DNA from: Blastocladiella emersonii ATCC 22665
Taxonomy: Eukaryota; Fungi; Blastocladiomycota
DNA: 64,000 bases
Direction: 5' to 3'
Assembly: GCA_025594325.1 (NCBI GenBank)
Contig: JANHCV010000007.1
Location: 248,001-312,000, forward strand
The translations under genes and the position numbers were made by a program. Below are positions 1 through 51,056 of this stretch, one piece after another (within the stretch, counting starts at the first letter, position 1; each line of letters begins with the position of its first letter). Below the pieces are notes generated by a model. That model saw only the letters and a program-made list of their open reading frames with translations, made no database searches and was not told the origin of the DNA.

Positions 1-1
1 C

Positions 2-2869
2 CCACGGCGGGCACACGGGCGCGTCAAAGTCAAAGAAAGTCCAGCGTCGAAGGAGCGCGACGACGCCTTCGTTGGACGCGCCTTGCGCTGTGGACACGTA
101 GGACAGGGCGGAGATGAGGCCGCACAAGTACGTCGACGTGGTGCGCGGATCGCGGCCAATGCCGACCTTGTACAGGACGACCGAGTGGATTTGGCCGAGA
201 AGTTCAAGCGTCGCTGGATCGCGAATGTCCATGCACCGGCGCAACCCCGTGATAAGCGCATTCCACATCGGTAGATTGATGCTCTGGTCGCCGTGCTCCT
301 CCATAAGCTTAAGGACACGGACCAACGCGAGCGGAACGTTAGCGCGCCCGCCAGGCACGAGAAGCGGGTCGATGCGTCGCGCAAACTCGATGAGCACCTC
401 GGGCAGCTCCTTTTCGGCGGCCTCGAGCACGCCCGAGCGCGAGTGCGGGTGCTTGCTGTCCTTGGTCCATCCGTGCAAATCATTTCGAGCACGCGGCTCG
501 GCGCTGAGAGCATCGCTCACCGCATTGAGAGTCGCCGGATCGCGGAACCGGACCGCAGCCCGCTGAAGCGCTTGGGCCACAACCGGAGACGTTCGGTACC
601 CGCGGCGAAGCATCTCGTAGTGTACGTCGAGCGCCGCATGAAGCAAATCAGCACGAAGCTCTGGCCCGGCCGTGGACGCGTTCGCAAGCGCGCTGATCAC
701 GGAATTGTAGTACCAGTCGTCGCAGAGCGCCCCTCGCTTGATCGCCCGAATGACCAAGTGTGCCTCGATGATAGCGTCGTACTGACCAAGCGCCGAGAGC
801 GCGCGAATCATGCAGTCGCAAATCTGCGAGTTCCAGTGCTTGGTGTCGTCGCCGTACTGGCCGATCAAAGCAAGCGCAGCCTCGGGATGACCCTGAGCAA
901 TATGACGATGTGCAATGAGGCTGATATTGTCGCCGTAAACAGGGAGCCCAAGTTTGGTATAGAGCGCAAGGACCCGTTCGGCATCGGCAAGGAAGAGCTT
1001 GTTAACGAGCGCATTCGAGATCCTCGCAATGCGAGCAGAAAGGAAGTCAGGAGGGCTCGGCGGCTGCAAAGTCATTGCTTCGGTACCCGGTGCGTCGCTG
1101 GAAGCAGTCGTTCCTGCACCGGAAGACTCGGGAGCTGGCAACGACGGAGGCGGTGGGGGCTGCCGGTGAGCAACAAAATCAGCAACAATTCCCTCGACGT
1201 ACTCGACCTCGGCGTCCAAGTCTTTGGCACAAAACGCAGCGTGTAAAAGCACCTCGTTCAGGTCCATGTCTGCGTACGGTCGCGAAAGCAGCCCGCAATC
1301 AACTGCTTCGTTGTGGAGAGCGCGCACTTGATTGAGCTCACCGTTTGAGGCATGGTGCGCGATGAGAACTTTGATCACGGGGTATCGAGGGACCCCAGGA
1401 AGCTGAGCAAGCCGACGAACTTCGTCGATAAGGCGCAGCTTCCCGCAGACGCTAATGACGGCGACAATGGCATCGATGGGCGCCCACGCCGGGTCGATGA
1501 GCGAAGCAAGAAAGATGGCATCTGTGTGCTCGACGTCGCGCCGCGAAGCACCGACGCAAAGGGCAGTTAAAGCGTCTGCATGGTCAAAGAAAAGATCGTG
1601 GATCCGCGGGATGCGCTCGAGTCCTCGCAAAAGGTCGCGTAGTCCCTGGCACAACAGCAGGCGCGAGTCCTCGACCTTGGACTTGATACTTGATAATGCA
1701 ACAAGCAACGCGAGAAGCGGCTCGAGTGACTTGGGCGAAAACGGGTCAATCGCGTTCCAGTTGATTTCGGAAATTGCGTTCCGGAACATTGTCGCGTCAC
1801 CCGCAAGGACGGAAGCTTCGGCGCGCGGGATCGGATCAAGCTTTGCGCGCTCTGCCGCCTGTTCAGCGGCGAGCTTACGCGCAGCTTCCTGCTCGGCAAG
1901 TTTCCGAGCCGCCGCTTCCTCTTCCGCGCGCTTCTGGGCAGCTGCAGCTTCCGCAGCCGCAGCCTCGGCCGCAGCCTTCGCCTCCGCCTCGGCAAGCTTT
2001 TTGGCCTTGCGCTTGGCACGCTTCCTTGCAGCACGCTCCTCGAGAGCAAGTCGCTTAGCCTCGGCCGCCTCGGCCGACGAGCGAATTTTGGCTGCGGTTT
2101 CGCGCTCGACATCAGCCGCAGTCTTGATCACGGTTTGGGGAGTCGATGTAACCTTTTCCGTCGCTGAAGCATCGGCAGCGGCCGCCGCAGCGGCCTTGGC
2201 CTCGGCACGTCGCATGCGCTTCCGCGCGGATTTGCTGAGAGCGGGTGTCGGAGCCTCGGGAGAATCGAGATCGGGTTTGGGAGCTGAGGGCGAAGCGAGA
2301 CTGGGATTGGGAGCCAGAGAGGAAGCAGTGTCGACCGCTGGCTCGGCAGCAAGCTTGGACTTTTTCTTTTTCTTCGCCTTGGGTTTCGCAGCTGGCTCGG
2401 CAGAAGACGAAGAAGTCTTGGCTGTCAGTGAAGCAAGACCGTTCATCGGCACAGCGGAATCGGGCGCCGACGAAGTTAGAGGGTCAGCGGGAGCAGGAGC
2501 GACCAAGCCGTCAGCCGGCTCGGGTGCTGAGTTGACCTTCGGTTTTTTCTTCTTCTTCTTCTTTTTTGGCGTAGAGGCCAGATCGCCGGTAGCTCCGACG
2601 ACATCCGAGGAAGCAGAAGGTGCGCCGATGATCCATCGGACATGAGGAACCGGCCCAGGGAGCGGCGGCCTGCTGGCCGAATCGACCGGTTCCTGATCAG
2701 AAGCTGACGAGAGAGGCTTCGGAGGCTTCACCGCAGCGGCAGGCGACGAACGAACAAACTCCAAAGCCGCCGAACCGGGTCCGCTCTGAGAAGACATGGC
2801 GGCGACCCGCGGGATCTGGGCGATTCGGCCTCGCCTGACAAATGCAGCAAGTCGTAACATCGAATACAT
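2..2869 (-). CDS. Family A (PPR-like, mitochondrial presequence) paralog A1, long form; 3' end runs off the left window edge
   Basis: Manual translation from ATG at 2869 gives MYSMLRLAAFVRRGR, near-identical to the start of 47901..51056. It contains GDATMFRNAISEINWNAIDPF (A6: GDAQMFRDAVREANWDKVDVF) and ends in frame at the window edge with ALLRRWTFFDFDAPVCPPW. The ORF track omits it, consistent with no stop inside the window. Confidence 0.85.
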   Translation of the reverse strand, partial: MYSMLRLAAFVRRGRIAQIPRVAAMSSQSGPGSAALEFVRSSPAAAVKPPKPLSSASDQEPVDSASRPPLPGPVPHVRWIIGAPSASSDVVGATGDLASTPKKKKKKKKPKVNSAPEPADGLVAPAPADPLTSSAPDSAVPMNGLASLTAKTSSSSAEPAAKPKAKKKKKSKLAAEPAVDTASSLAPNPSLASPSAPKPDLDSPEAPTPALSKSARKRMRRAEAKAAAAAAADASATEKVTSTPQTVIKTAADVERETAAKIRSSAEAAEAKRLALEERAARKRAKRKAKKLAEAEAKAAAEAAAAEAAAAQKRAEEEAAARKLAEQEAARKLAAEQAAERAKLDPIPRAEASVLAGDATMFRNAISEINWNAIDPFSPKSLEPLLALLVALSSIKSKVEDSRLLLCQGLRDLLRGLERIPRIHDLFFDHADALTALCVGASRRDVEHTDAIFLASLIDPAWAPIDAIVAVISVCGKLRLIDEVRRLAQLPGVPRYPVIKVLIAHHASNGELNQVRALHNEAVDCGLLSRPYADMDLNEVLLHAAFCAKDLDAEVEYVEGIVADFVAHRQPPPPPSLPAPESSGAGTTASSDAPGTEAMTLQPPSPPDFLSARIARISNALVNKLFLADAERVLALYTKLGLPVYGDNISLIAHRHIAQGHPEAALALIGQYGDDTKHWNSQICDCMIRALSALGQYDAIIEAHLVIRAIKRGALCDDWYYNSVISALANASTAGPELRADLLHAALDVHYEMLRRGYRTSPVVAQALQRAAVRFRDPATLNAVSDALSAEPRARNDLHGWTKDSKHPHSRSGVLEAAEKELPEVLIEFARRIDPLLVPGGRANVPLALVRVLKLMEEHGDQSINLPMWNALITGLRRCMDIRDPATLELLGQIHSVVLYKVGIGRDPRTTSTYLCGLISALSYVSTAQGASNEGVVALLRRWTFFDFDAPVCPPW

Positions 2870-2948
2870 GGCAGGGTGTGTGCAGGTCTACATGTGCGGG
2901 GAGCGCGAGTGCGCCCAAGTTGATCGAGCGGAGTTGTGCTACGCCGCT

Positions 2949-2954
2949 CACGTG
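2949..2954. promoter_or_regulatory. CACGTG E-box ~80 bp upstream of A1 ATG
   Basis: TCACGTGAG; CACGTG also lies at a similar distance upstream of A3 and A6. Confidence 0.4.
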
Positions 2955-3076
2955 AGATAAGCGCCGATCACTTACCACGCGATCCTGCGAGGCCGTACGC
3001 GTTATTAATCGAATATTCAGCAAGCTAGAGTTATGAGGGTATCGAAAAATATTTATGAACAAACACGCGGCACCAC

Positions 3077-4933
3077 CTAGGAGCCCGCCTCGACTTTGCG
3101 CCTCAGGGCCTTGAACTGCTTTGTCTTTAGCAACGGTGTAAGCTCCCGCCTGTGCGCTCGGATCATGCTCCCAAAAGTTTGGACCAGTTTCGCGTCAGGG
3201 GGATCCCTAGCCCGCTCACGGTACTCGGTCGCGCACTTGAGCGCGAGCTGGCCATCGCCAAGGCGGATCGCGGCCTCCGCAAGCGAGGTCCACAGGTTCG
3301 TATGCGTGAGCGCAGCCAGGTCACCGCGATTTGGTCCGCCTGCGAGGATCTCCTTGACCAGTCGCTGAAGCAAATCGTGTCGACCGGCGAACCCGATTGA
3401 GTCAGCAGCGACTGTGAGAGTTCGCGGCTGCCACATGGCATTGACCTGGTCCCGGCGGCCCGCTTTTGATGCGTCACCGTGCCACGGGTCGTCTTTGCCG
3501 ACCCAAGGTGGGCAGACCGACACCTCCCTGTCAAAGAAGATCCAACGGTTCAATAGGGCGATGATCGGATCGCAGTTCGCGCTGCGCTCAGACAAGATGT
3601 GTGACAAGGCCATGAGAAGATTGGTGAGGTAGATGCGAGTGGCCCGTAGGTCCCGCCCGAGTCCAGCCTGAGAAACGACCGTCGCGTGAACTTGACTCAA
3701 GAGTTCGAGAGTCGTAGGGTCTGTCCTGGACATACGCCGATGAATCGCTGTGACCAGCGCCGACCAATGGAAGAGCGACAGCTTCCGCGGGCCGTACTGC
3801 TTCAGAATATCATGCATAAGCGCGTACGCGAGGTAAATGTCGTCGCGAGTGCCCGACTCAAGGAGTGGTTTGACTTCGGCGGCAAAGGTTTCGTGCGCTG
3901 TCAGGGAACCTGTTTTGAGAGCCGTCACATGGCTGGATTTGAAGGCAAGAGGCATTGGCATCAGTTGAGTTATGCTGCTCACAACGGCCAAGAGCGCTGG
4001 ATCATTGACCTTGGCCGCAGCTCGCTTCAGGGCCACGGCGGCCATGACGGACAAGGAAAAGACTGCAGTGCGCATGTCGGCGTGAACCGCGAGCGCGTTG
4101 CTGAGCAACAAGCTGCACGCGGGATCCTCCGCCATCGATGCGTTTGAGAGCAGGCTGACGACCGTGTTGTAGTATTGCGCGTCCAGCGACACCTCGGATT
4201 TGACTAGCTCGCGATGGCACGTTTCAATGGCGCCTGGGATTCCTTTGTCCGCCAAAGCTTGAGCAAAGAAGGTATATGCAAGCGCGGGCCGATCTTGTAG
4301 GGTACGCGAAAAGGCGTGCCAAATGGGCTGCTGCCAGTGGGCTTCCCCGTAGGTGCAGATGCGAAAGCCCACGCTGCTGGCGGTGTTGGGTGGGGCATAC
4401 GTGAAGAAGACAACAAGAAGGCTCGTTGCTTTGGTAAGCCGACGGTCCGACACGAGCGCAGTCACGAGGCGCAAAACACGGGCAGGAATACGTGATGTAT
4501 ACTCGGGACTCGTGGTGAGAGTGGGCCAAAACGGTTCCTGCAGCGCGGTGGTCAAAATACGGGCTTCCTCGGCGGCGTTTCCCGCTTGATACACGGCGTC
4601 AAGCAGAAGCTCCCAGAAATCGGCGTCGGTAAAATTGGAGAACATGGCGCGGCTGTCATGGCCGAGCCGCAGCTTTTGTGCTTCGGGGTTGAGCGCGCGA
4701 ACTTCCTCGAGCTGTCCGTCATCTGCCCAAATCCGGGCGCGCTTGCGAAGCTCTTCAATTTGAGGCACAAAGGTAGGAGCGGGAATAAATCGGCGATCAT
4801 CTTCCGTCAAGTTGAGGTTGAGCTCGCCAGCCGCGCCGTTTCCGAGGCCCGCTGAAACGCGAAAGGCGCGGCGTGCCGGAGCACAAGCGCGTAACCGAAC
4901 GACATTTGCAGCAAGTCGCAGCATCGTATTCAT
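3077..4933 (-). CDS. Family A paralog A2, short form (618 aa)
   Basis: Open ORF. Arg-rich, acid-free N-terminus MNTMLRLAANVVRLRA. PPR-like helices (YYNTVVSLLSNA) and the family C-terminus WIFFDREVSVCPPW...TNLWTSLAEAAIRLGDGQLALKC. Confidence 0.85.
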   Translation of the reverse strand: MNTMLRLAANVVRLRACAPARRAFRVSAGLGNGAAGELNLNLTEDDRRFIPAPTFVPQIEELRKRARIWADDGQLEEVRALNPEAQKLRLGHDSRAMFSNFTDADFWELLLDAVYQAGNAAEEARILTTALQEPFWPTLTTSPEYTSRIPARVLRLVTALVSDRRLTKATSLLVVFFTYAPPNTASSVGFRICTYGEAHWQQPIWHAFSRTLQDRPALAYTFFAQALADKGIPGAIETCHRELVKSEVSLDAQYYNTVVSLLSNASMAEDPACSLLLSNALAVHADMRTAVFSLSVMAAVALKRAAAKVNDPALLAVVSSITQLMPMPLAFKSSHVTALKTGSLTAHETFAAEVKPLLESGTRDDIYLAYALMHDILKQYGPRKLSLFHWSALVTAIHRRMSRTDPTTLELLSQVHATVVSQAGLGRDLRATRIYLTNLLMALSHILSERSANCDPIIALLNRWIFFDREVSVCPPWVGKDDPWHGDASKAGRRDQVNAMWQPRTLTVAADSIGFAGRHDLLQRLVKEILAGGPNRGDLAALTHTNLWTSLAEAAIRLGDGQLALKCATEYRERARDPPDAKLVQTFGSMIRAHRRELTPLLKTKQFKALRRKVEAGS

Positions 4934-5127
4934 GGAAGTGAGTGCTTCATGGGAGTCGGCGGGAGGGAGAGCAAGGCGAGCGCGCCGTTCATCTCAAAAC
5001 GCCACCCGAAGCGCCGCCGACACGGCTTGGACGCGCTCGCTCTCGCCACTCCCTCGGCCCTCCTACTCTCTTCTGGAAGGGGACAAGACCGATTCCAAGA
5101 AGATATCGTTACACTCGAGCGTCTATT

Positions 5128-7419
5128 CTATATCGTCGCCTCGACCGACGTCCCCGCGGCCGCCTCGACCTGTCGCTTGACCGCCGCGTACCTCGGGTCG
5201 CGGAGGACCCACGCGAGCTCGGGCTTGTGGACTTCGACCATGGTGTGCACGGTGCGGACCATCTTGAGGTCAGGCTGCGCGCCGGCCTTCTCGCGGAACT
5301 CGCTGATACACGCCAGCGCGAGCTCGCCATCCTCCAACCGTATCGCCGCCTCGGCGAGCGACGTCCACACGTTGGCGTTGGTGATGATGCGCGGGTTAAG
5401 CTTGAGCGGGCCGCCGGCGCGGATCCCTGCCACGAGGCGGCCGAGCAGCGCGCGGTCGCCCGCGTACCCGACCGAGTCGGCGGCGACGGCGAGGGACTGG
5501 TGGGTCCACAGGATTAGCATGAAGGCGTTGCGGCCGGACTCGGCCGTGATCCCGTCAAAGGCGTGCCACGGCTCGGCGTCGTGGACCCACGGCGGGCACG
5601 CGGGCACGTCCGTGTTGCCGAACAGCCACCGGCGGAGCAGCGCGACGACGACGACGGTGTTCGACTCTGCGCGGCTCTGTGCCGACACGACGTGCGAGAC
5701 GGCGGTGATGAGCCCCGTGATATACGTCGCGGACGCCTTGGCGTCGCGGCCGAGCCCGACGCGGAACACGACCGCCGAGTGGATCTGTCCCAACAAGTCG
5801 AGCGTCTGCGGGTCGGCCTTGTCCATGTGGCGGTGCAGCGCCGTGACGATGGCACACCAGCGCGACAGCGGGAGGGACTCGGCGCCGTGGGTGTCGATGA
5901 TGGCGATCGTGTGGACCAGCGCCGTCGAGACGGACCCGGCGTGCAGCAGCGGCTCGACGGCGCGGTCAAACTCGGCCACGGCTTCGGGGACCGTGTGCGC
6001 AACACCCGTAACGCGCGGCGGGCCGGCGTGCGCGACGGCGCCGCGGACGGCCGCCTGGACTTCTGGGTCGCCGACGCGGGTGGCGGCGCGGCGCAGCGTC
6101 GACGCCGTGATCGCGTCGGGCGTGTGCCCGTCCGCGACCATGTCCTCGCACACGTCAATGGCGTGGAGGATCAGGTCGGGCTGCGGCGAGACGTCGTCGG
6201 ACCCGACGGCGGCGTTGGCGAGGGCGATCACGGTCGCCTCGTATGTCCACGCGTCGCACAGGTTGGTGCCGCGAAACGTCGCGTAGGTCTCGAGGACGGC
6301 GTCGGGCAGGTCCTTTGCAGCGAGTGCGGCGATCAGGGCGTTGACGACGCGCGGCGACCAGTGGTCGGCCTGCGCGGCGTACCGCTGGATGAGGGCGAGT
6401 GCGGCGTCGGGCAGCTCGTTGGCCGTGTACTTTTTCGCAATGTAGCTGAGGCACATCGAGTTGACGGGCCTGCCGAGTTTGCCGAGGAGCGCGAGCACCT
6501 GCTCGGCCTCGTGCAGGTACAGGCGGTCGGCGAGCGCGGTGACGGCGCGCGGGATCCACTCGAGCAGGTATTTGGGCGGCGGCGACACGTTGCCGTCGTC
6601 GCACGCGTCCTCGGCCATGGTCTCGAGCAGGCGCGCGAGGGTCTCGATCTCGCCCGCGGCGTGCGCGGCGCGGAGCAGCGCGTTGTTGAAGTTGGGGTCG
6701 GCGAGGTGGTACTCGAGCGCGCCGCTCTCGACGGCCTCCATGTTAAGCCGCTGCACGCCCGCGAGGTCGCCCGCGTACGACAAGATCTCGGCGCGCATGC
6801 ACAGGGTGATGACGGGCGGGACGCCCTTGATCTTGCCGAGCGCGACCACGTCGTCGGTGCGGCGCGCCTGCACGCACACGCGCATCGTGGCGACGATCGC
6901 GGTCAGCGGCGCCCACGCCGGGTCAATGAGCGGCAAGAGCAGCGGCGCCGCGCGTTCGCCCAACCGCCGCCTCGCTGCGCCGACGCACAGGCCGATGAGG
7001 GCGTCGCGGTTCTGGAACAGCGTGTCCGAGACGCGCGGGACGCGGGCGAGCCCGGCGAGGAGCGCGACGAGCCCGTCGTCCCACTCGGCGCGCGGGTCGT
7101 CCGAGTGCGCGGGGACGGTGCGCAGGGCGGCGCAGAAGTTGGTTAGCGCTACGTCGCCCTGCACCGCCGCGGCGGTCTCGGCGGCATCCCACGGGACGGC
7201 GGCGACGGCCGCGTGGAACCCGGCGGCGTCGGCGCTCACAACGCACGCGCGGTGGTGTGCGAGGCTGTGCAGGGGCCCGCGCGCGCGCTTCGTTGTTGCC
7301 GTCGCGAGCGGGCGCACGACGAGACGCGTCCGTGTTGCCGCCGCCGCCGCGGGTCTCAGCGCGTGCGCGGCGCACCGTGGCAGCCGCGCGAGTGCAGCGA
7401 GTCGCCGCAACGTGTACAT
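5128..7419 (-). CDS. Family A paralog A3, long form, strongly GC3-rich
   Basis: Likely start MYTLRRLAALARLP at 7419, with the same caccctgccATGTA context as A1 and A6. PPR-like motifs FNNALLRAAHAAG, VVNALIAALAAKD, WTYEATVIALANA. C-terminus WLFGNTDVPACPPW...NVWTSLAEAAIRLEDGELALAC. Confidence 0.85.
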   Translation of the reverse strand: MYTLRRLAALARLPRCAAHALRPAAAAATRTRLVVRPLATATTKRARGPLHSLAHHRACVVSADAAGFHAAVAAVPWDAAETAAAVQGDVALTNFCAALRTVPAHSDDPRAEWDDGLVALLAGLARVPRVSDTLFQNRDALIGLCVGAARRRLGERAAPLLLPLIDPAWAPLTAIVATMRVCVQARRTDDVVALGKIKGVPPVITLCMRAEILSYAGDLAGVQRLNMEAVESGALEYHLADPNFNNALLRAAHAAGEIETLARLLETMAEDACDDGNVSPPPKYLLEWIPRAVTALADRLYLHEAEQVLALLGKLGRPVNSMCLSYIAKKYTANELPDAALALIQRYAAQADHWSPRVVNALIAALAAKDLPDAVLETYATFRGTNLCDAWTYEATVIALANAAVGSDDVSPQPDLILHAIDVCEDMVADGHTPDAITASTLRRAATRVGDPEVQAAVRGAVAHAGPPRVTGVAHTVPEAVAEFDRAVEPLLHAGSVSTALVHTIAIIDTHGAESLPLSRWCAIVTALHRHMDKADPQTLDLLGQIHSAVVFRVGLGRDAKASATYITGLITAVSHVVSAQSRAESNTVVVVALLRRWLFGNTDVPACPPWVHDAEPWHAFDGITAESGRNAFMLILWTHQSLAVAADSVGYAGDRALLGRLVAGIRAGGPLKLNPRIITNANVWTSLAEAAIRLEDGELALACISEFREKAGAQPDLKMVRTVHTMVEVHKPELAWVLRDPRYAAVKRQVEAAAGTSVEATI

Positions 7420-7513
7420 GGCAGGGTGGTCATGGATGGAGCAGCGGTGCCCGCCGTCGCGGTGGTGAGATGCGCGTCCGCTCGGCGATCGGCCAAGCAT
7501 CCCCTGAGAGCCG

Positions 7514-7519
7514 CACGTG
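7514..7519. promoter_or_regulatory. CACGTG E-box upstream of A3, in the divergent A3/TF-like intergenic region
   Basis: GCACGTGG ~95 bp upstream of the A3 ATG. Confidence 0.35.
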
Positions 7520-17100: not shown

Positions 17101-17491
17101 CTGGATCACGCAGGCGCTCGAAGCCAGTTACTTGTACCTGCCGCCGATCCCGTCCAAATCGACCTCGTCGGCTACCGAGCGCGCCTCGGCTCAGCGGCTG
17201 CGCAAGCTCTTCGAGAAATCCGAGTCTGTGTACGTCCGCGCAGCCGGTCGCCAATACCCTGCTGTGAGGTGGATGGGCCGACATCCTATCGCAGTCGCCG
17301 AGTACTTGAGCTTCTGCAACGCGACCGTGGCCGGCCAGCCGCTGCTCGACATCAAGGAGTTTCTTTCGCCCAAACCCGGGGAAGAGCAGATCGCTGCAGC
17401 CACGGCTGCGTCGTTCGCCTGCCTCAAGTCGGAACTCAAGCGCGCGCTGATTCTGCCGCTTTTTCCGAGTCTGCGAAACATCTCCCGTTGA
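14158..17491 (+). CDS. Family B (DUF4470-type, SAM-methyltransferase-like) paralog B1, divergent; 2 exons
   Basis: ORFs 14158-15936 and 15764-17491 join in frame via intron 15713-15785 (GTACGG...CGTAG), at the same protein position as the intron in B2-B4. Motifs DLFLYH...DLRSVAHT, PEPISRLLLVLH, FDVIDTSALMDHCGGLIL...PLL. Confidence 0.75.
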
Positions 17492-38733: not shown

Positions 38734-41700
38734 ATGCCACACGGATCCGCCATGACCGCCGCTCCGACCACGACTGCTACCAGCACCCCACCCGCCGCCG
38801 CGGCCGCCGCCAAGACGCGCGCCCGCACGCGCACGCGGTCCGCGACGGGCGGCACCAACGACGTCGCCCTGCTCGACCGGTGGCGCGAGCGGCTGCGCGA
38901 CCTGACGGAGCTGCAGCTGCCGACCGACTACCCGCGCACCACGCCGCTGCGCATCGTCGAGGCCGACGAGCAGCGCGAGCTGCCCATCGCCACCACCCTC
39001 GCCATCCTGCAGCTGTCGCTCCAGTGGCAGGCCGAGCGCATGGCGCGCGGTTCGTCGGGCGACGAGACCGAGACCGACCTCGACGTGGTGTCGCCGTTCC
39101 AGGTCCTGCTCGGCGCCTTTGCCGTGCTGCTGCACCGGTACACGGGCGAGGAGGACGTCAGCGTCGGGTCGTCGAGCATCGACGGCGAGCCCGTGGTCCT
39201 GCGCCTGCGCGTGCGCCCCGACGACTCGTTCAAGCAGGTCGTCGAGCGCGTGTGCGACGTGGAGCGCGAGGCCCTGCACGACCCGGTCCCCTTCACGCGC
39301 CTCGCCTCGGCCGTCGCCTCGTCGTCCGCCTCGGCCAGCGACGGGTACCGCCCCGCGCTCTTCAAGGTCCGCTTCTTCAACATGCCCGACACCACGGCCG
39401 CGACGCTGGCCGCCGAGGGCACCGCCACCGACCTGACCATCTTCATCAGCACGTCGCCGTCGCTGCGCCGCCTGCTGCCCATCCACGTCCGCATCGCCTA
39501 CAACACGTGCCTGTACGCGCCCCAGCGCATCCGCGACATGGCCGACCAGCTCCTCCTCATCCTCGACGCGGCGCTGCGCCACCCGGACTCGCCCGTCGCC
39601 GCCATCGACCTCGTCACGCCCGGCATGCGCCCGCGCCTCCCCGACCCGCGCGCCGACCTCGGCTGGGACCAGTGGCACGGCGCCATCCACGACATCTTCT
39701 CGCGCAACGCGCGTGCGCATCCGGACCGCACGTGTGCCGTCGAGCGCACCGCCAAGGGCGGCATCGAGCGCGTGTTCAGCTACCGCCACATCCTCGAGGC
39801 GAGTAACGCCGTCGCCCACTACCTCCTCGCCCAGGGCGTGCAGCGCGAGGACGTCGTCATGCTCTACTCGTACCGCGGCGTCGACCTCATGGTCGCCATC
39901 ATGGGCGTGCTCAAGGCCGGATGCACTTTCTCGGTCATTGGTACGCCTTTCTCTCGTTGCTCGACCTTCCCGGACATCGACTAACTCGTACCGCCATCAT
40001 AGACCCGGCCTATCCACCGCAGCGCCAGATCATCTACCTGAGCGTGGCGCGCCCGCGCGCGCTCATCGTGCTGTCGCACGCCGGCACCCTGGACCCGGCC
40101 GTCCGCGCCTACGTGTCGAGCGAGCTCGACGTGGTGTGCGAGATCCCGGACCTGGCGCTCGGCGACAACGGCGTCCTCACCTCGTCGTGCCTGGCGCCGC
40201 ACCTCGCCGACGGCGCGCGCGACCCGGCCGTCGTCGTCGGGCCCGACTCGATCGGCACCCTGTCCTTTACCTCGGGCAGCACGGGCATCCCCAAGGGCGT
40301 GCGCGGCCGCCACTTTTCGCTGACCCACTTCTACCCGTGGATGCAGGCGCGGTTCGCGTTGTCGGAAACCGACCGGTTTACGATGCTGTCGGGGATCGCA
40401 CACGACCCGATCCAGCGCGACATCTTCACGCCGCTGTTCCTCGGCGCGTCCCTGTACGTGCCGACGGCCGAGGATATCGGGACCCCGGGCCAGCTCGCGC
40501 AGTGGATGGCCGACCACGCCGTGACCGTCACGCACCTGACGCCCGCCATGGGCCAGCTACTGACGGCGTGCGCGGCCACGTTGGCGCCGATCCCGTCGCT
40601 GCGCGCGGCGTTTTTCGTCGGCGACATCCTGACCAAGCGCGACGTGGCGCGCCTGCAGCACCTCGCGCCCAACTGCACCACCGTCAACATGTACGGGACC
40701 ACCGAGACCCAGCGCGCCGTCAGCTACCTCGCGGTCCCGCCGCGCGCCACCGACCCCGAGGCGCTCGCCGAGTGCAAGGACGTGCTCCCCGCGGGCCAGG
40801 GCATGCACCACGTCCAGCTGCTCGTCGTCAACGCCCGCGGCAACCAGTGTGGGGTGGGTGAGGTCGGCGAGCTCTACGTCCGCTCGTCGGGACTCGCCGA
40901 GGGGTACCTCGGGCTGCCCGACGCGACCCACGCCAAGTTCCTGCCCAACCCGTTCGGCAATTCGGGGGAGGTCGCCGACCCGCAGACGCTCGCGGCGGCG
41001 CCGTACGTCACGGGCGACGGCAGCCTGCCGTACTTCCGCGGCGCGCGCGACCGCATGTACCGCACGGGCGACCTCGGGCGGTACCGGCCCGACGGGCAGG
41101 TCGAGTGCTCGGGCCGCGCCGACGACCAGGTCAAGATCCGCGGGTTCCGCATCGAGCTCGGCGAGATCGACATGTACCTGAGCCAGCACCCGGCGGTCCG
41201 CGAGAACGTGACGCTCGTCCGCCGCGACAAGGACGAGGAGCAGACGCTCGTGTCGTACCTGGTCCTGCACGACGAGGCGGCCGAGGACGGCGCGCCTGTC
41301 GCCGCCGGTAGCCGCGTCCGGTACGCGGTCCCCGCGTCGTACGCCGAGACGGCCAAGGCGATCCGCGAGTTCCTGCGGTCCAAGCTCCCCGCGTACGCGG
41401 TCCCCGCCGTCCTGTGCCCGCTCCGCCACCTCCCGCTCACGCCCAACGGCAAGATCGACAAGAACGCGCTGCCGTACCCGGACACGTCGGTCCTCGTCGC
41501 GTCGCAGCCGCCCGCGCAGCACGACACGGAGCTGTCGGCCGTCGCCGCCCAGCTGCGCGACCTGTGGGCCGCGCTGCTCGGGGTGCCCGCGGCGTCGATC
41601 GCGCCCACCGATAACTTTTTCGAGATCGGCGGCCACTCGGTCCTCGCGACGCGACTCACGCTGCAGGTCCGCCGCCACTTTGGGGTTGCTGACGCCCCGC

Positions 41701-43313
41701 TCGCGCTCGTCTTCGACCACCCGGTGCTGGGCGACATGGCCGAGCACGTCGATGCGCTCATGTCCGTCCTCGGCCCCGCCAACGCGCCGTCGCCCGCCGC
41801 GACCGGCGCCGGCGCCGAGTTCAACTACGCGGCCGAGGCCGTGCTCCCCGACGACATCGCGGTCCCCGCCGCCTCGGCGTCGATCCCGACGGCGCGCCCG
41901 CGCCACGTCCTCGTCACGGGTGCGACCGGGTTTCTCGGCGCCTTCATCGTGGCGCAGCTCGTCGACCGTGCGCGCGCGCTCGACCCCGAGTCGACGGGCG
42001 CCGACTTCACCGTGACGTGCGTCGCGCGCGCGGGCTCGGACGCCGACGCGCTCGCCCGCGTCACGCGCAACCTGCAGCACCACGTGTGCTGGTCCCCGCG
42101 CATGGCGCCGCACGTGCGCGCGGTCGCGGGCGACCTGGCCCTGCCGCGGTGGGGGCTCAGCGAGGCGACGTGGGGCGAGCTCGCGGCGAGCGTCGACGCG
42201 ATCGTGCATAACGGCGCCATGGTCCACTGGGTGTACCCGTACGCCAAGCTCGCGCCGGCCAACGTCGCGGGCACCGTCGGGGCGCTCCGGCTCGCGGTCG
42301 CGGGGGAGAAGGTCAAGCCCGTCCACTTTGTCTCGTCGACGTCGGTCCTCGACACGCCGCACTACGCGGCGCTCGGCGCCGCCGTCGCCGAGGACGACGC
42401 GCTCGCCGGGTCGCGCACGGGCCTGCGGTCCGGGTACGCGCAGACCAAGTGGGTCGCAGAGCGTCTGTGCGCGGCGGCCGCCGACCGCGGCGTCCCCGTC
42501 ACGGTGGTCCGCCCGGGTTACATTGTCGGGCACTCAGCGTCGGGCGTCACCAACGCCGACGACTTTTTGTGGCGTCTCGTCAAGGGATGCATCGAGCTCG
42601 GCCAGGTCCCCGATATCCGCAACGCCGTCAACATGTGCCCCGTCGACTACGTCGCCGAGTGCGTCGTCGCGCTGGTCCTTGGCGACCACCACGCCGCCAA
42701 CGCTGACGCTATTGAGTCGGGCGCCAGCAGCCCGACGTCCGAGACCCACAGCGACGCCGACCTGGCGGACGCTGCGCCCGCGTGGTCCGCGTCGGCGCAC
42801 CCCGTCTACGGCCGCGTCTACCACACGTACAACGGCGAGAACTTCCGGTTCTCGGACCTCCTCGCCGGCTCGCTCGCGCCCGCGTGGCCCGTCGCGACGT
42901 GCGCGTACCTCGCGTGGCGCTCAGCCCTCCTCACCTACACGCTGCAGGAGGAAGAGTCGGCGCTATACCCGCTCCTCCACTTTGTCCTCGACGACCTGCC
43001 CACATCGACCCGCGCGCCAGCTCTCGACGACGCGCATACGTTCGCGGTCCTGACCCGCTGGCGCGCAGAGTGCCGCCGCGCCGCCCGCCGGTCGGCTGGC
43101 GGTGTGTCGTTGCCGGACGTCGCGGCGCCCTCGATGCGCGACGGCGTGCCCCGCGCGCTCGCGTACCTCGTCGCCGCCGGGTTCCTCCCGAAGCCTACCG
43201 TAGCCGAGGCGGCTGCTGGGTGGCCCAAGGTCGCGGACGAGGTGCTGCTCGCGATCGAGAAGTCGGGCGCGGCCGGGTCGCGCACGTCGGCGGCCACAGC
43301 GGCCAAGGTGTAA
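38734..43313 (+). CDS. LYS2: L-aminoadipate-semialdehyde dehydrogenase (alpha-aminoadipate reductase), C-like-A-T-R; 2 exons
   Basis: LPTDYPR, intron 39941-40002 giving SVIDPAYPPQRQ, LSFTSGSTGIPKGV, NMYGTTETQR, YRTGDLGRY, QVKIRGFRIELGEI, carrier-domain FFEIGGHS, reductase VLVTGATGFLG and GYAQTKWVAE. Confidence 0.97.
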
Positions 43314-43503
43314 TGAGTTTGTTGATGATTGGATGAATGAACTATAGCTTTGTATTCAACGACGTCTTTCAGGCCTGCTCGCGGGAGTGATGCGAGCCCC
43401 GATGCGACCCAGCCGCGCTGACGTTTCGTGTGGCGCCGCCTTTGAGCCGAACGTCGGAGTCCACTACTCCTCCCTCGCCGACTGCCATGAAACGCTCACT
43501 TCC

Positions 43504-45638
43504 ATGAATACGACGATACGACTTGCTGCATCTGCCATATTGTTACGCGCCCGTGCCCAGCGCAACCTGTCGACCAAAGTCATGCATCCGGAGCTCGTCC
43601 GCAGGATTCTCAGCAACGGGCGCTCGTTGCATCCGCCGATTTCGGGGCAATCTAAGATCAGCGCGCTTCTCAGCAGCGAGTCTCGACCTGTGCCAACTTC
43701 AATGCTGCATGCCAAAGCACAGGAACTGCTATTGTACGGCGTGAATGACCACTGTGCCGGCAGTCATTGGCCTTTTGCTGACGCCCAGTCTTTCGAACTG
43801 CTTCTCGTGGCGGCGCGCCGCGCCAAGAACGTTTCGACAGAGGCCCGCTTACTGCTGCGTGCGCTCGAAGAACCTAGCTGGCCTGCTTTCGCCAAGGATC
43901 CCGGGCTTATTCAAAAACTTGCCACCCGCGTTCCCCATCTTGTGCGAAAGCTTCCGGACACTGACCATCTTGACCGAGCCGAGGAGCTCCTTTTCGCATT
44001 CGGCGCGTTTGGACAGCCAGTTCACCTGTCCGGTTTGGAAGTTGTCGTGGACCGGCACTTGACCGCGGGACGCCTCTCGAAGGCTTCGTTCCTGCTTTTT
44101 CGCGCACGTGGTCGGCTTCGCGAGGATCTCCCTCCATTGATACACATGCTTTCTCCCCGAGTTCTCGCTGCCCAGGGAAACACACGCGACATCGTTCATT
44201 CCCATGACGAGCTGCATACCTCTGGTGCCTCCGTGGACGCCAAGTATTATTCTACCGTCATTGAGCTGCTCACCAAGGCGTCGATAGAGGCGAAGCCGCC
44301 GTGCAAAAACTTGCTTGCCAGTGCTGGCCGTATCCATGCCGAGATGTGTGACGCAGGGTTTTCTCTTTTCGTGACCGTCGCCGTGGCCTTGCATCGCGCT
44401 GCGATGGAGGCCGACGATCCAGCGCTTTCCGTTGCAATCTCCAATGTTCTTCTGTGCCCTCAACGCCCGGTCGCGCTTCATTCTTGTTCGAGCTCAACTG
44501 ACACGCTTACCGTGCCGTCCGAGCCCAAAAGATTGCGCGATGCCAATTCTGCAACGTTGCCCGCGGCACTTCCATTGATTCTGGAGCTTTATTTCGCGCA
44601 GAGCTCCCCTATGGCGGCTTCAAGGGGCGCACCTTTGCAGTGGAACGTGTCCCGCAATCGTAAGCTGGCCAACGTGTCGCGTGACCGTAGACTGATCATG
44701 CTTGTCGGTTCGGAAGGAACTCTCCCAATTACGCCATACTATCGTATTCTCGACGCCAAATCGTCACTCACTGGCAAGAGAAAAGGAGGAGGTCAATCTC
44801 GAGACTTGGCCACGGTCTATTTCGAGCATCGGCTCTCATGTATAGGGCTCGCGCTCTGCCCCCCGAAGCTCGACCCTGTCCACAACGCGCACTTGGTCGT
44901 GTTGGACATTCTCGACACATTTGGCTCAAAAAATTGCCAATCTACCACTGGACAGCTCTAATTAGCACCATCCACCGCTACATGCCCAGAACCGATCCCG
45001 CGACCCTCACCCTCCAGAGTCAAGTTCATCGGACGGCCGTTTCACAGGTTGGACTTGGTCGTGACTTGCGGTTGACAAGTGCTTACCTCACTACACTCCT
45101 CAAGGCGCTTTCACACATCTTGTCCGAGTGTAATGCGAAATGCGATCCGGTCGTTGCGATCCTGAACCACTGGGTTTTCTTTGACCGAGACGCACCAGTT
45201 TGCTTGCCTTGGGTTGCTCGGACTGATCCGTGGCTCGGTGACGCGTCCGAAGCTGGGCAGCGCGCCTTGGTTGACACCATGTGGCGGCAGCGGACGCTTT
45301 CGGTTGCTGCGGACTCGATTGGCTTTGCTGGCCGGCAGGATTTGCTCGAGCGCCTGGTCAAGGAACTTCTTGCGGGCGGACCGAACCGCAGCAACCTGGC
45401 CACTCTCACCGAGACGAACACATGGACTTCGCTCGCAGAAGCCGCGATCCGCCTTGGCGACGGTGAACTCGCTCTGAAGTGCGCGACCGAGCACCGTAAG
45501 CAGGCCGGAGTTCTTCCCGACGAGAAACTCGTTCGAACGGTTGAGAGCATGATCGGCGCGCACAGGCCAGAGCTCAAATCGATGCTCAAGTCGAAGGAGT
45601 TCAAGGCCTTGAAGCGCGAGGTCGAAGCGGCTTCCTAG
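43504..45638 (+). pseudogene. Family A paralog A4 (short form), frameshifted in an A6 run at ~44928-44933 (or a sequencing error)
   Basis: Start MNTTIRLAASAILLR with the same upstream leader as A2 and A5. One extra A in GGCTCAAAAAATTG restores FGSKKLPIYHWTALISTIHR, matching A2 YGPRKLSLFHWSALVTAIHR. Family C-terminus is intact in the downstream frame. Confidence 0.75.
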
Positions 45639-45806
45639 CTTTCTTCTTCATATACTTGTTCTATATGATTCTTGGTTTTCACTGTCGCTAGGTAGTGAGA
45701 GTGATGCAGCCCTGTCTAAGCCGTGTCGGCGGCGTTTCGGGTGGCGTCGAGATGAACGGCGCGTCCTCCTCGCTCCCCGGCCGACTCCCATGAAACGCTC
45801 ACTTCC

Positions 45807-47692
45807 ATGAACACGATGCTACGACTTGCTGCAAATGTCATTCGGTTGCGCGCCCGTGCTCCGGTGCACCGCACAGTCAACCACTCGGCGGGTCGCGCGA
45901 TCGGCTCGGTCCCACAGCCCAAGCTTGGCCCACTTGGACGGAGCTTGCATACCCCGCTGCCACGTGCTAATCTGCGAAAGCTCGAGAAGCTTCGTAAACG
46001 TTGTCAAGCGTTTCTGGATTCTGGCGAACTTGACGAAGTCCGCTCGCTGCTATCGGACGCACACTCTCAAGGCAACTTTGTCAAGTCAGTCGCGCAACCC
46101 GAATTTTGCGAATTCCTTCTTGACGCGGCGTGCCAGGCCGAAGGTGCCTCAAGGCAATTGTCGCACCTCCGAGCGGCAGTCCAGGTGGTAATGCGTTCTC
46201 AACCCGCGGACGTTGAGTTTGCGTCACGCCTCGCTACTCGCGTCCCTAGTCTCGTAGACACCCTCGTCATTGAGCGTCGCCTTGACGCTGCCGGCGACGC
46301 GCTCGCGCTACTTCCGGGGCTTCAGAAGCCGATTGACATGCAGTGCTTCAAGCTTATCGCCAATCAGCACTTTGCTCTCAGAGAACGCAGGACTCTCGAG
46401 GACGTTATTCTTCGTCTGTTTTCGTCCGAGCCTGAGAATTGGCCCTCGCTGGCTTGCACGCTTCTTGCCCGCGAGCGCATTTTCCGTGGAGCCACTACCA
46501 TTTTTCCACCGTATCACAGGCAAATGATTGAATCGAAGGCCGCCTTGGACATGCAGTACTACAACACGACCATCGAGCTGCTGTCAAAGTTCTCTGTGGC
46601 GGTGAACCCGCCGTGTGACGATTACCTTCGCACCGCGCTCGCAGTTCACGCGGACATGCGCATCGCAGGCTTTTCGCTTACCCAGATTACCACTGTGGCC
46701 TTGAAGCGTGCAGCGGCACAGGTTTACGACCCTGAGCTGCTGGCAGCTTTATATGACGTTGTTCGACTTGCTCCAACTCCGAGTTTTGCAAAATCAGTCC
46801 CGCGGCCGACTCGCAAGCCGGCGTCCTTCAGCTCCGAGTCTGACGCTGTGCGTTCTGTGCTGAAGGATCTCGCGTCGAACTCAGACGCTGATCCTGACCT
46901 GGTGTACGAGCGCATGTTGAACATCATCCACTTGTACGGCCCGACGACGCTTTCACTTCGTCATTGGTGCGGACTTGTCACGGCCATTCACCGCCGACTA
47001 GACAAAGCTGATCCTGGGACGATTGAGCTACTCTGTCGGGTCCACTTGACAGTGCTAATTGAGGTCGGCCTTGGTCGTGACTTGTCGGATACGAGCGCCT
47101 ACCTTACTGGACTCTTGATGGCCCTTTCGCACATATTTGATGCCCGCCGGACTCACAACGTAGCAGTCATCCCAGACTTCAATTGCTACCCGATCATCGC
47201 CATGATTGAACAGTACATATTCTTTGAAGATCGTCCCTTCAATTTATGCCCCCCCCCTGGGCGCACACGTGGGATGTTGCCTGGCACGGCGATCAATCTG
47301 AGGAAGGCCGTCGCGCCTTCGTCGACGCGATGTGGCGGCCTCAAGCGCTTTCCGTTGCTGCTGACGCGATCGGCTTCTCTGGCCACCGTGACTTGCTCCA
47401 GCGCCTGGTCAAGGAGATTCTCAAGGGCGGACCGAATCAAAGAGACCTGGCCACTATCACGCAAACAAATACGTGGACCTCGCTCACAGAGGCGGCCCTA
47501 CGCGTTGGCCTCGGCCAGTTGGCGCTCAAGTGCGCGACCGAGTACCGCGAGCGGGCCGGAGTCCCGCCTGACGTCAAGCTGATTCGCACGGTCAAGAGCA
47601 TGATCGGAGCGCGGGACAACAAGAAGCTCAAGTGGGTGCTTGAGGCCCCTGAGTTCGTGGACTTGGAGCGCCGAGTCAGGACGGCTTCCTGA
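45807..47692 (+). pseudogene. Family A paralog A5 (short form), frameshifted in a C9 run at 47249-47257 (or a sequencing error)
   Basis: MNTMLRLAANVIRLRA. TGC+C8+TGG breaks the conserved CPPW motif, and the downstream frame resumes WHGD...WTSLTEAALRVG. Confidence 0.75.
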
Positions 47693-47817
47693 CTTGCGCC
47701 GCCTTTGGATTTGGTTTATGTACCATTAATGTACCATTTCATACACCCTTCAATGCACGCTCCTCTCTCCAGTGCGCGATCTCGCCGGATGGCGTGATAA
47801 GTGATCGGCGCGTCTCC

Positions 47818-47823
47818 CACGTG
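47818..47823. promoter_or_regulatory. CACGTG E-box ~78 bp upstream of A6 ATG
   Basis: CCACGTGAG, homologous to the A1 site. Confidence 0.4.
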
Positions 47824-47900
47824 AGTGGCGGCATCAGCTGTGCTGATCAACTCGGGCGCATTCACGCTCTCCGCACATGTAGACCAGCACACACCCTGCC

Positions 47901-50900
47901 ATGTATTCAATGTTACGACTTGCTGCATTTGTCAGGCGAGGCCGCACTGCTATCGTCCCGCGGGTCGCCACCATGTCATCTCGAAGCGGCCTAGGCACCG
48001 CGGCGTTGGAGTTTGCTGGCCCGCCGACACCGGGCCGTGGGTCGAAGCGCCTTACCTCTCGTTCTTCGACAGCCAAACCGCAGTCGACTACGCCATCGCA
48101 ATCGCACGAGCGGCCGCGACAAACCCGTCTCACCTACTTGACGCAGTTCGCGCCAAACGCTTCGCCGTACGACGTAACTCCTGCGGAAAAATTACAGCTC
48201 TCAGTGACCAAGCCCAAACCTGCAAAGCCCTCGCCTTCACCCGCTCCTTCGCCCGTTCCTTCGCCCGCTCCTTTGCCCGCTCCTTTGCCCCCGCAGTCGC
48301 AGCCGATCCCGGCTCTCAAACCCAAAGCGATCAAGGTCAACGTTGCTGCCGCTTCCGGACCGAAGCCGCCCATTGCTTCATCTTCTGCGCCGCCGCCGGA
48401 GCCGCGGGCCCCGGTCGAACCTCTCTCCAAACGGGCCGCTGAACGCCAACGACGCGACAAAGTAGCTGCAGCCGCGGTGGCCAAAGCTTCCCCCGACCCG
48501 AACTCGGCGGAACCTAAACCCGCCCTTCCTCCCGCAAGCAGTGCTGCGGCAACGACGCCTCGCGGCGTGATTCATAAGGCCGCCGTTGGCGAACGGGCTC
48601 CCTCAGTCAAATCGCGCGCGTCGGCGGAAGCGGCCAAATCCAAGCGACTTGCTGCCGAGAAGCGCGCCAAGGTCAAGGCCGAGGCCAAAGCCCGTAAGGC
48701 TGCGGCGGCAGCGGCACGTCGCGCCGAGGAGGAGGCTGCAGCCAAAAGGCTTGCCGAAGCCAAGGCGGTTGCGGAAGCCGCAGCAGCCAAAAAACGCGCC
48801 GAGTACGAGGCTGCTCGCAAGCTCGCCGAAGAGGAAGCAGCGAAGCGCGCCAAGCTATCCCCGATCCCGCGCGCCGAAGCTTCCGTCCTTGCGGGTGACG
48901 CGCAAATGTTCCGCGACGCGGTACGCGAAGCCAATTGGGATAAAGTTGACGTCTTCTCCGCCAAAAAGGTCAAGCCGCTACTTTCGCTTCTCGCTGCGCT
49001 TCCCTCAATCAAATCCAAGTCCGACGACCCGAGTTCGGTGTGGTGCGAGGGTATTCGCTCGCTTGTTCGCGGACTCCAACGCATCCCGCGACTGCACGAC
49101 CTCTTTTACGATCACGAGGCCGCGCTGTCGTCGTTTTGCGTGGGCACCTCGCGGCGCGACGTCGAGGAGAGCGATGCCGAATTCCTCGTTTCGCTTCTTG
49201 ACCCGGCATGGGCGCCTGTCGATGCGATCGTCGCTGTCATTCGTGTCTGTGGCCAAGTCCGCCGGATCGACGAAGTTCAGCGCCTCGGCCAGCTGCCCGG
49301 GGTCCCTCGTTACCCGGTGATCGGGATTCTTGCTGCCTACTACACTCAGCGTGGCGATCTTGCTTGGGTTCGCGCGCTGCACACGGAGGCCGTGGACCGC
49401 GGCTTCATCGAGCGGCCGTACGCCGACCTGAACTTCAACCAGCTGCTTCTCGAGGCTGCAACGAATGCTCAAGATCTGGATGCGGAGGCTGCCTTCGTGG
49501 AGGGCATGGTCGAGGATTTCGCGGCTAACTCGCAGCCTTTGGCTTCTGCAACTGCTTCTGAGCCTGCGGCGCCCCGTGCTCCCGAGTTTCTGGTCAAGCG
49601 CATCACGAAGGTGGCGCAGGAGCTTGTCACGAAGCTCTACCTTGGCGATGCCGAACGTATCCACTCGCTTCGTGGCAAGCTCGGTCTTCCGCCACTCGGC
49701 CACTTCATCTGCCTGATTGCGCAGCGTCATTATTCGCAGGGTCGTCCCGAGTCGGCGCTAGCGCTCATTGGTCAGTACGGCGATGATACCGCCCAGTGGA
49801 ATGCGGGCGTTACTGAAATTTTTATCCGCGCGCTTGGCGCTCTTGGGCAGTACGACGCGGTCATCGATGCGCACACCACTTTCCGTGGACTCGAAGACGG
49901 ACGCTTGCTCGACGGATGGTACTATAGTACGTTGATCATCACTCTTTCGAACGCGGCGACTTCGGGACCGCAGCCCCGTGTCGACTACTTGCACGCAGCG
50001 CTTGATTTTCACCAAGAAATGCTTCAGCGCGGCACCCCGACACCTCCAATCGTCACTTCTGCGCTGCAGCGTGCCGCCACGAAGTTCCGCGACCTTGCCG
50101 TCCAGGGTCGTGTGCACGAAGCGCTTCACGCGACACCTGCGAGCCGGAGACGGAAAAATCGAGCTGATGCGGCTTCGGATCGGCCCCAAAGCCCCGCTGA
50201 CCCGCCCAAGGCTTCCGAGGTGCTTGCCGTGTTTGCCAGGGATATCGACCCGCTTCTCGAACCCGGTTTGCGCGCCAATGTGCCACTTGCAGTCGTCCGT
50301 ACACTCGCGCTCATGGACGAGCACGGTGACCAGAGCATCCCGCTGCCGCTGTGGAACGCGCTCGCGACGGGGGTGCGCCGCTGCATGGACAACACGGACC
50401 CCGAGACGCTTGAGCTTCTCGGCCGGCTGCACGAGACGGTCATTTTCCGCGTCGGGATCGGCCGCGAACCGCGTACGACCACCGCCTACTTGTGCGGGAT
50501 CATGGCGGCCCTCTCGCATGTCTCGTCTCGGCAGAACGTGTCTGACGACGCCATCATCGCAATGCTGCGCAAGTGGATCTTCTTTGACTCGGACGTGCCC
50601 GCGTGCCCGCCTTGGGTGAGCGAGAACGAGCCGTGGCACGGCAGGAACACGGAAGCCGACCGACGCGACTTTGCTTGGGCAATGTGGACGCAGCAGTCGC
50701 TCTCCGTCGCCGCCGACTCGATCGGGTTCGCCGACCGCCACGACCTGCTCCTGCGCCTCATCGACCTGATCTTCGCGGGCGGCCCGCACGGCGTCAACTT
50801 CGCCATGCTTACCAACGCCAACGTGTGGACGTCGCTCGCTGAAGCTGCGATTCGACTCGGCGACGGCGAACTCGCGCTCAAGTGCGTCACCGACCACCGC

Positions 50901-51056
50901 ATCCGCGCGGGCGCGCCCGTCGACGCCAAGATGGCGAACGCGTTGGAAACCATGGTCAAGAACCGCATGTCCATGTACGCGTGGATGCTCAAGGACCCGC
51001 GGTACCTCGCCCTGCAGCGCGAGTACCAGGAGCAGCAGCGACGCGCCAGCGTGTGA
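47901..51056 (+). CDS. Family A paralog A6, long form (1051 aa)
   Basis: Open ORF with presequence-like MYSMLRLAAFVRRGR and a Lys/Ala/Glu-rich helical linker. PPR-like motifs FNQLLLEAATNAQD, TEIFIRALGALGQYD, YYSTLIITLSNA. Family C-terminus present. Confidence 0.88.
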   Translation: MYSMLRLAAFVRRGRTAIVPRVATMSSRSGLGTAALEFAGPPTPGRGSKRLTSRSSTAKPQSTTPSQSHERPRQTRLTYLTQFAPNASPYDVTPAEKLQLSVTKPKPAKPSPSPAPSPVPSPAPLPAPLPPQSQPIPALKPKAIKVNVAAASGPKPPIASSSAPPPEPRAPVEPLSKRAAERQRRDKVAAAAVAKASPDPNSAEPKPALPPASSAAATTPRGVIHKAAVGERAPSVKSRASAEAAKSKRLAAEKRAKVKAEAKARKAAAAAARRAEEEAAAKRLAEAKAVAEAAAAKKRAEYEAARKLAEEEAAKRAKLSPIPRAEASVLAGDAQMFRDAVREANWDKVDVFSAKKVKPLLSLLAALPSIKSKSDDPSSVWCEGIRSLVRGLQRIPRLHDLFYDHEAALSSFCVGTSRRDVEESDAEFLVSLLDPAWAPVDAIVAVIRVCGQVRRIDEVQRLGQLPGVPRYPVIGILAAYYTQRGDLAWVRALHTEAVDRGFIERPYADLNFNQLLLEAATNAQDLDAEAAFVEGMVEDFAANSQPLASATASEPAAPRAPEFLVKRITKVAQELVTKLYLGDAERIHSLRGKLGLPPLGHFICLIAQRHYSQGRPESALALIGQYGDDTAQWNAGVTEIFIRALGALGQYDAVIDAHTTFRGLEDGRLLDGWYYSTLIITLSNAATSGPQPRVDYLHAALDFHQEMLQRGTPTPPIVTSALQRAATKFRDLAVQGRVHEALHATPASRRRKNRADAASDRPQSPADPPKASEVLAVFARDIDPLLEPGLRANVPLAVVRTLALMDEHGDQSIPLPLWNALATGVRRCMDNTDPETLELLGRLHETVIFRVGIGREPRTTTAYLCGIMAALSHVSSRQNVSDDAIIAMLRKWIFFDSDVPACPPWVSENEPWHGRNTEADRRDFAWAMWTQQSLSVAADSIGFADRHDLLLRLIDLIFAGGPHGVNFAMLTNANVWTSLAEAAIRLGDGELALKCVTDHRIRAGAPVDAKMANALETMVKNRMSMYAWMLKDPRYLALQREYQEQQRRASV
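48240..48290 (+). repeat. 12-bp coding minisatellite x4 (PAPS/PVPS/PAPL) in A6
   Basis: cccgctccttcg / cccgttccttcg / cccgctcctttg / cccgctcctttg. Confidence 0.7.

Follow-up and report, generated by a model that had tools for sequence, protein, structure and literature searches.

The 64,000-nucleotide stretch of the Blastocladiella emersonii genome analyzed here (the window; bases 248001-312000 of contig 19, in an assembly of 32.65 Mb and 21 contigs) contains six intronless paralogous genes, A1 to A6, whose products are predicted to be pentatricopeptide repeat (PPR) proteins. They form two head-to-tail arrays that lie 36 kb apart and diverge from each other, A1-A3 being encoded on the minus and A4-A6 on the plus strand, with intergenic gaps of only 169-212 bp within the arrays. 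A shared C-terminal signature occurs six times in the window according to motif and open reading frame (ORF) scans, and a six-frame search of the genome places all six copies, which were thus found where the first-pass annotation of this DNA had located them. The protein identity between copies (35-59%) is far above chance and agrees with the earlier description of the paralogs as strongly diverged. The assembly was obtained by PacBio HiFi sequencing with Pilon polishing and was annotated with funannotate, resulting in 10,031 genes (PMC9730499).

In the first array, A1 (1..2869, minus strand; long subtype) is the in-window part of an intact ORF of 1102 aa (L016:3564-6869:-) that extends 436 bases beyond the start of the window and contains no frameshift; of this ORF the public annotation includes just the final 247 aa (P0002). 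A2 (3077..4933, minus strand; short subtype) is intact and encodes 618 aa, with four in-register PPR repeats at approximately 4025-4495 and the C-terminal domain at 3080-3886. A3 (5128..7419, minus strand) is also intact, encodes 763 aa when read from its MYTLRR start, and equals the public model P0001. The second array starts with A4 (43504..45638, plus strand; short subtype), which is truly degraded: its N-terminal part (43504-44511) and its C-terminal part (44928-45635) lie in different frames, approximately 300 extra bases without counterpart in the other copies occur within 44511-44928, and there is an in-frame stop (one TAG inside the profile match) as well as a frame shift at an A-run (44928-44933). 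In A5 (45807..47692, plus strand; short subtype), the frame is broken at one point: a stretch of nine C (47249-47257) within the CPPW codons is one base too long, which may be genuine or a leftover homopolymer or assembly error. A6 (47901..51056, plus strand; long subtype) is intact with 1051 aa, its C-terminal domain being located at 50232-51053. The division into long and short subtypes, proposed at first sight of the sequence, was borne out, the short copies missing a conserved N-terminal block, and the two copies reported as frameshifted are A4, with several frame changes, and A5, with one. Only in A1 and A6 is the presequence separated from the conserved body by a Pro/Ser-rich linker and, after it, a Lys/Ala/Glu-rich stretch of approximately 70 residues (in A6 at approximately 48642-48854).

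The family is not confined to the window. A genome-wide count with a profile of the C-terminal (CPPW) domain, as had been proposed earlier, gave exactly 12 copies, the additional ones being tandem pairs on contigs 2 and 11 and single copies on contig 3 (copy E) and contig 15 (copy D). Copy E is identical to KAI9164262.1 of B. emersonii ATCC 22665, copy D is interrupted by a TAA in frame and no longer has a presequence region, and a further copy outside the window, B2, has lost the ancestral start codon. Two more distant relatives are present on contig 11 (L024:3683-6595, minus strand, a frame of 971 aa; L025:2252-4315, plus strand, a frame of 688 aa); the family hidden Markov model aligns to both (E ~1e-28), covering the repeats and the final portion of the C-terminal block. 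Other PPR loci detected in the genome by a Pfam PPR_2 scan number approximately seven, and the family of 12 more than doubles the detectable PPR complement of this genome. The initial remark that a tandem PPR expansion of this kind is unusual for a fungus therefore stands.

Outside this species the family has few known members. A search of 1.84 billion (1.84e9) protein representatives with the profile of the C-terminal domain yielded nine matches, three of which derive from the B. emersonii genome itself (A3, the A1 fragment, and E). The others came from Catenaria anguillulae (5e-32, together with a fragment), Blastocladiella britannica (1.3e-18), Allomyces macrogynus (2.8e-11), and A. javanicus, the ninth being a weak repeat match. 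The eight matches that are named or lie on B. emersonii contigs thus all belong to the Blastocladiomycota, and the proteins of the relatives are homologous along their full length. Each of the three loci examined in relatives holds one copy, with no other within 10 kb on either side, but additional, unannotated copies in these species may exist because 9 of the 12 copies of B. emersonii itself are missing from the public set. No synteny was found between the loci of the relatives and any B. emersonii locus and, therefore, the orthology of copy E is argued from the phylogenetic tree. In A. macrogynus, L023:5224-5679 is an exact second copy of the region encoding residues 13-164 of the homolog, 4.3 kb upstream of the gene.

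Simpler searches recovered little of this. Exact look-ups of the ORFs that were tried found none on record, and a word-based protein search found nothing with A2 or with the initial alignment of the family, a result that carries little weight here; with a trimmed alignment the same type of search returned copy E alone, despite the presence of the sequences of the relatives in the query. In the literature no paper was found that names both pentatricopeptide and Blastocladiella.

A full-length member of the family has four parts. Its N-terminus resembles a presequence and is followed by a helical block that is conserved but missing from the short forms; the other two parts are a central region of 35-residue repeats and a C-terminal block. 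The N-termini contain 5-8 Arg/Lys among the first 40 residues, and acidic residues first appear at position 30-69 of the intact copies, with the exception of B2 (position 20), in good agreement with the Arg-rich, acid-free N-termini noted before. Most copies are basic, with an isoelectric point (pI) of 8.4-9.5. The N-termini thus have the composition of mitochondrial presequences, and from this we infer that the proteins are most likely located in the mitochondrion.

The proteins are predicted to be PPR-type alpha-solenoids. A profile built from nine family members matches maize PPR10 (E 1.5e-11), the plant mitoribosomal protein rPPR5 (2.6e-10), and also rPPR4, and it matches designer PPRs down to 2.4e-37, its positions 323-472 being in register with four consecutive 35-residue repeats of the latter; copy E alone matches designer PPRs at 4e-11. 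Matches to the Pfam families PPR, PPR_2, and PPR_3 are sub-threshold (E 3e-4 to 1e-3; in 1-3 of the nine members) and, because the profile is significant in these comparisons where single sequences fall below threshold, we base the assignment on the profile of the family. The AlphaFold2 model of A2 is an all-alpha solenoid with a predicted local distance difference test score (pLDDT) of 76, and its top matches in both Foldseek and VIA-align are PPR proteins. The suggestion that the helical repeats resemble degenerate PPRs is, therefore, upheld both by the register of the profile and by the predicted fold, for which profile and structure comparison had been proposed as a check. Language-model neighbors, which we regard as leads only, fall in fungal PPR, MNE1, and Aep2 clusters.

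The conserved C-terminal block (“CPPW/WTSLAEA”) was recognized early on as a domain of approximately 170 aa; the block is real but its length is approximately 270 aa. Over 11 copies its mean column identity is 43% and 22 residues are invariant. When modeled alone (from A2) it reached a pLDDT of 92.9 and a predicted template modeling score (pTM) of 0.89. Its best structural matches are PPR solenoids and include PPR10 (Z 13.5), CIA84 of Yarrowia (Z 12.7), rPPR5 (Z 12.6), yeast Rmd9 (Z 12.1), and an entry with the yeast translational activators Aep1/Aep2/Atp25 (Z 10.9), scores that fall in the range of helical repeats and, therefore, speak to the class of fold and not to kinship. The signature “WTSLAEA...GDGELAL” is PPR-like, and all nine intact copies share an invariant Thr at its position 5 and an invariant Asp at its final position. 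According to these models, the C-terminal domain is itself composed of PPR-like helical repeats.

This bears on the idea, voiced in the first-pass annotation, that the proteins act in RNA editing, in which case they would be specificity factors for an editing machinery. The PPR fold is the one feature in favor of such a role. Pfam scans revealed no DYW, deaminase, or other catalytic domain, the C-terminal domain folds in the model as helical hairpins, and its profile has no significant match among the sequences of solved structures. With no catalytic domain, RNA editing is left without support and we consider it extremely unlikely.

The structural comparisons also point in another direction. 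CIA84 is a fungal complex I factor that binds ND2, and by analogy the solenoids of B. emersonii might bind mitochondrially encoded membrane subunits rather than RNA, with different paralogs serving different subunits or complexes. The Yarrowia protein (7zkq_C) was second in both structural searches, with 208 residues of the C-terminal domain aligned to its C-terminal part at the Z of 12.7 given above, and with a Z of 13.2 for the whole model; furthermore, the nearest language-model cluster of copy E is “Complex I intermediate-associated family protein” (score 0.96). The likeness extends to general build, since CIA84 is a fungal-only, PPR-like solenoid (by HHpred) of 852 aa whose C-terminal end forms the functional core (PMC9668296). 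However, 7zkq_C shows no sequence match to the family even at E up to 10, generic PPR proteins reach equal Z scores, and the B. emersonii family possesses in-register PPR motifs, whereas the CIA84 paper reports none for the Yarrowia protein, and moreover describes CIA84 as one protein and not as a multi-copy family (PMC9668296). We judge a CIA84-like role unlikely, although it is a serious rival to a function in RNA binding. The gene encoding CIA84 is single-copy.

For the phylogenetic tree, and for that purpose only, broken copies were read piecewise or with an X at the breaks. The maximum-likelihood tree unites the six copies of the window in a single clade (100/100), within which the branching is (A1,A6), A3, (A4,(A2,A5)); the sister clade comprises the copies of contigs 2, 11, and 15. 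Copy E and the three relatives stand opposite the other 11 copies across a branch with a support of 85/89; because the tree is unrooted, it does not date the clade of 11 copies relative to the split of the species. The pairing of A1 with A6 and of A2 with A5 is a mirror image, consistent with an old inverted duplication of a segment that carried one short and one long gene.

The copies are old and moderately constrained. Even the closest pair, A1/A6 (59% protein identity), has a synonymous divergence (dS) of 1.1, and for the remaining pairs tested dS is at least approximately 0.7, so that no young copies are present. The ratio of non-synonymous to synonymous divergence (omega) is 0.23-0.55 in nine out of ten pairs, values to be read with the caution that dS is saturated and the power of selection tests low. 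The exception is E/A3 (omega 1.1, dS 0.68), a value that is probably biased because both genes are very GC-rich. By our estimate, random codons at 60% GC would contain approximately 3% stops, and the fact that frames of 600-1100 codons have stayed open across such an old divergence therefore argues for purifying selection.

These data can be set against the interpretation that was originally put forward for the cluster, i.e., mito-nuclear conflict similar to that of plant restorer-of-fertility (Rf) genes, with rapid birth-and-death of copies under diversifying selection and a role in silencing changing selfish mitochondrial ORFs or introns. The tandem clusters, the length variants, the two pseudogenes (A4 and D), and the one frameshifted copy are all in line with it, as is an expansion seen in this species alone among the annotated relatives. 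Also the code positions 5 and 35 of the repeats differ even between the sister copies A1/A6 and C1/C2. However, a comparison of divergence among the paralogs, which had been suggested as a check, provided no sign of Rf-like diversification: every pair is old and omega is that of constrained genes in all but the one pair mentioned. The nine code columns have a mean pairwise identity of 0.21 and the repeat region as a whole (155 columns) one of 0.26; in a permutation test of low power, values this low were obtained with 28% of random column sets (p ~0.28), and the code columns are, thus, no more variable than the remainder of the region. Of the proposed birth-and-death the pseudogenes and length variants fit, but the rapid turnover does not. 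The mitochondrial genome is small (36.5 kb; the genome paper mentions a separate mitochondrial contig of 36,503 bp; PMC9730499) and nothing ties the family to selfish elements there. Mitochondrial DNA, including cox1, was sought in the assembly that we searched and is absent from it. An Rf-like conflict is, consequently, quite unlikely in our opinion.

We favor instead, with moderate confidence, the view that these genes constitute a Blastocladiomycota-specific family of nuclear-encoded, intronless PPR solenoids that are probably mitochondrial and act as RNA factors for individual transcripts, with the C-terminal block serving a shared partner. Tandem and segmental duplication in the lineage of B. 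emersonii would have led to the present 12 copies. Each paralog would bind a particular mitochondrial transcript via the surface of its repeats, and the bound transcript would be stabilized or presented to the mitoribosome; the variable repeats would choose the target and the invariant C-terminal block would contact the partner that all copies have in common. Gene-specific mitochondrial PPR factors that stabilize RNA or activate translation are indeed known from fungi (PMC3185421, PMC4179968). Given the age and constraint of its copies, the family would resemble a repertoire of diversified helper proteins of the mitochondrion rather than the product of a plant-style arms race.

A number of observations weigh against this. 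The Pfam gathering score for PPR is reached by no single copy, the best being 18.2 bits for PPR_long against a cut-off of 27, and a Z of approximately 13 lies inside the range that any helical repeat may give. Positions 5 and 35 mostly lack the residues of the canonical plant code and, therefore, no RNA target is readable; an attempt to read targets from these positions was dropped for this reason. A3 (pI 5.9) and B2 are acidic. Finally, the ten copies other than A3 and E have a weak codon bias, with a GC content at third codon positions (GC3) of 0.57-0.76, and 9 of the 12 copies are absent from the public protein set, in which A3, E, and the A1 fragment are the only ones present. With respect to the first point, PPR proteins of fungi typically score low in Pfam.

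The codon usage deserves further consideration. A3 is the sole window copy with a strong codon bias (GC3 0.93) and resembles in this respect copy E (0.91) and the neighboring Lys2-type gene (0.94); A2, with its low GC3, is located just 195 bp from A3. The simplest reading of this pattern, judged from codon use, is that A3 and E are well expressed and that the rest are expressed weakly or conditionally. The absence of nine copies from the public set may likewise indicate that many of them are weakly expressed. In the published annotation, genes with a low GC3 appear to be called too rarely; gene finders would have missed them because they are of this weakly or conditionally expressed type, with non-housekeeping codon use. 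Given this annotation gap, family copy numbers in early-diverging fungi may be systematically under-counted. RIP-like mutation as the origin of the low GC was ruled out, since TpA/ApT is 0.35-0.55 and CpG is not depleted.

The same data could also mean that the family has only one or two working genes (A3 and E) and that the ten other copies are drifting, barely expressed duplicates without a distinct function. The housekeeping-like GC3 restricted to A3 and E, the composition of the public protein set, and the damage to A4, D (including its lost presequence), and B2 would all follow from such a situation. Nevertheless, nine copies keep frames of 600-1100 codons in the face of heavy synonymous divergence; these open frames together with the omega values require purifying selection and weaken this explanation, and 22 residues of the C-terminal block have remained invariant in 11 copies. 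Drift of the ten copies is, therefore, very unlikely.

If the preferred reading, a set of mitochondrial RNA factors, is correct, the closest functional counterparts would be the yeast factors Pet309, Aep3, Rmd9, and Aep1/Aep2 of Saccharomyces cerevisiae and Ppr1-Ppr10 of Schizosaccharomyces pombe. These factors, too, are encoded in the nucleus and are degenerate PPR solenoids (600-1000 aa) that lack a catalytic domain and have presequence-like N-termini, and among them Rmd9 and Aep1/Aep2 (in the entry with Atp25) are matched by the B. emersonii models. There is, however, no detectable orthology, the B. emersonii family being confined to the Blastocladiomycota and having a conserved C-terminal block of its own. 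Furthermore, the yeast factors are single-copy and unrelated in sequence (PMC3185421), whereas the B. emersonii family comprises 12 copies, with tandem arrays. With the restorer-of-fertility-like (RFL) clusters of plants the family shares P-type PPRs, the lack of introns, the clustering, and the occurrence of pseudogenes and length variants, but it belongs to another clade, in which the only named homologs of its defining domain are found. It also differs from the RFL clusters in the age of its copies, in its constrained omega values, in lacking excess variability at positions 5 and 35, and in having no known mitochondrial target. The NCL cluster of Chlamydomonas, consisting of octotricopeptide repeat (OPR) genes, is a further comparable case, as it is a clustered, lineage-specific, and likewise expanded set of organellar helical-repeat RNA-binding proteins. 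It differs in that its proteins are OPR and not PPR proteins, act in the chloroplast, and stem from much younger paralogs.

These comparisons allow a more far-reaching proposal, which we put forward as speculative and on present evidence unlikely: the blastoclads may have built their own set of gene-specific mitochondrial factors from one PPR ancestor, with approximately one paralog per transcript, arrays that track changes of the mitochondrial DNA, and a C-terminal module that docks to a common partner (e.g., the mitoribosome). If this were true, the family would be the equivalent in a fungus of both the Rf-like clusters of plants and the NCL cluster of an alga. Independently of this proposal, the copies of the tandem arrays have in common a strongly conserved C-terminal module that occurs in no other group, and with its 12 copies from one PPR gene the family offers a tractable natural series in which to study how the specificity of mitochondrial helical-repeat proteins diversifies.

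The window contains two further features. A second tandem family is represented by at least four copies of DUF4470 (PF14737), approximately 1150 aa in length and 27-60% identical, at 14158-17491, 53032-56606, 56963-60409, and 60707-63530. One of these is a single ORF of 1148 aa, and the others comprise 2-3 ORFs each, split by introns or frame breaks; like most of the PPR copies, the DUF4470 genes in the window have a GC3 of 0.57-0.76. In addition, an ORF of the alpha-aminoadipate reductase type is present on the plus strand (39921-43313), with adenylation, carrier, and reductase domains. It is without its N-terminus, which may reside in the upstream ORF at 38734-39984, with an intron or a change of frame in between.

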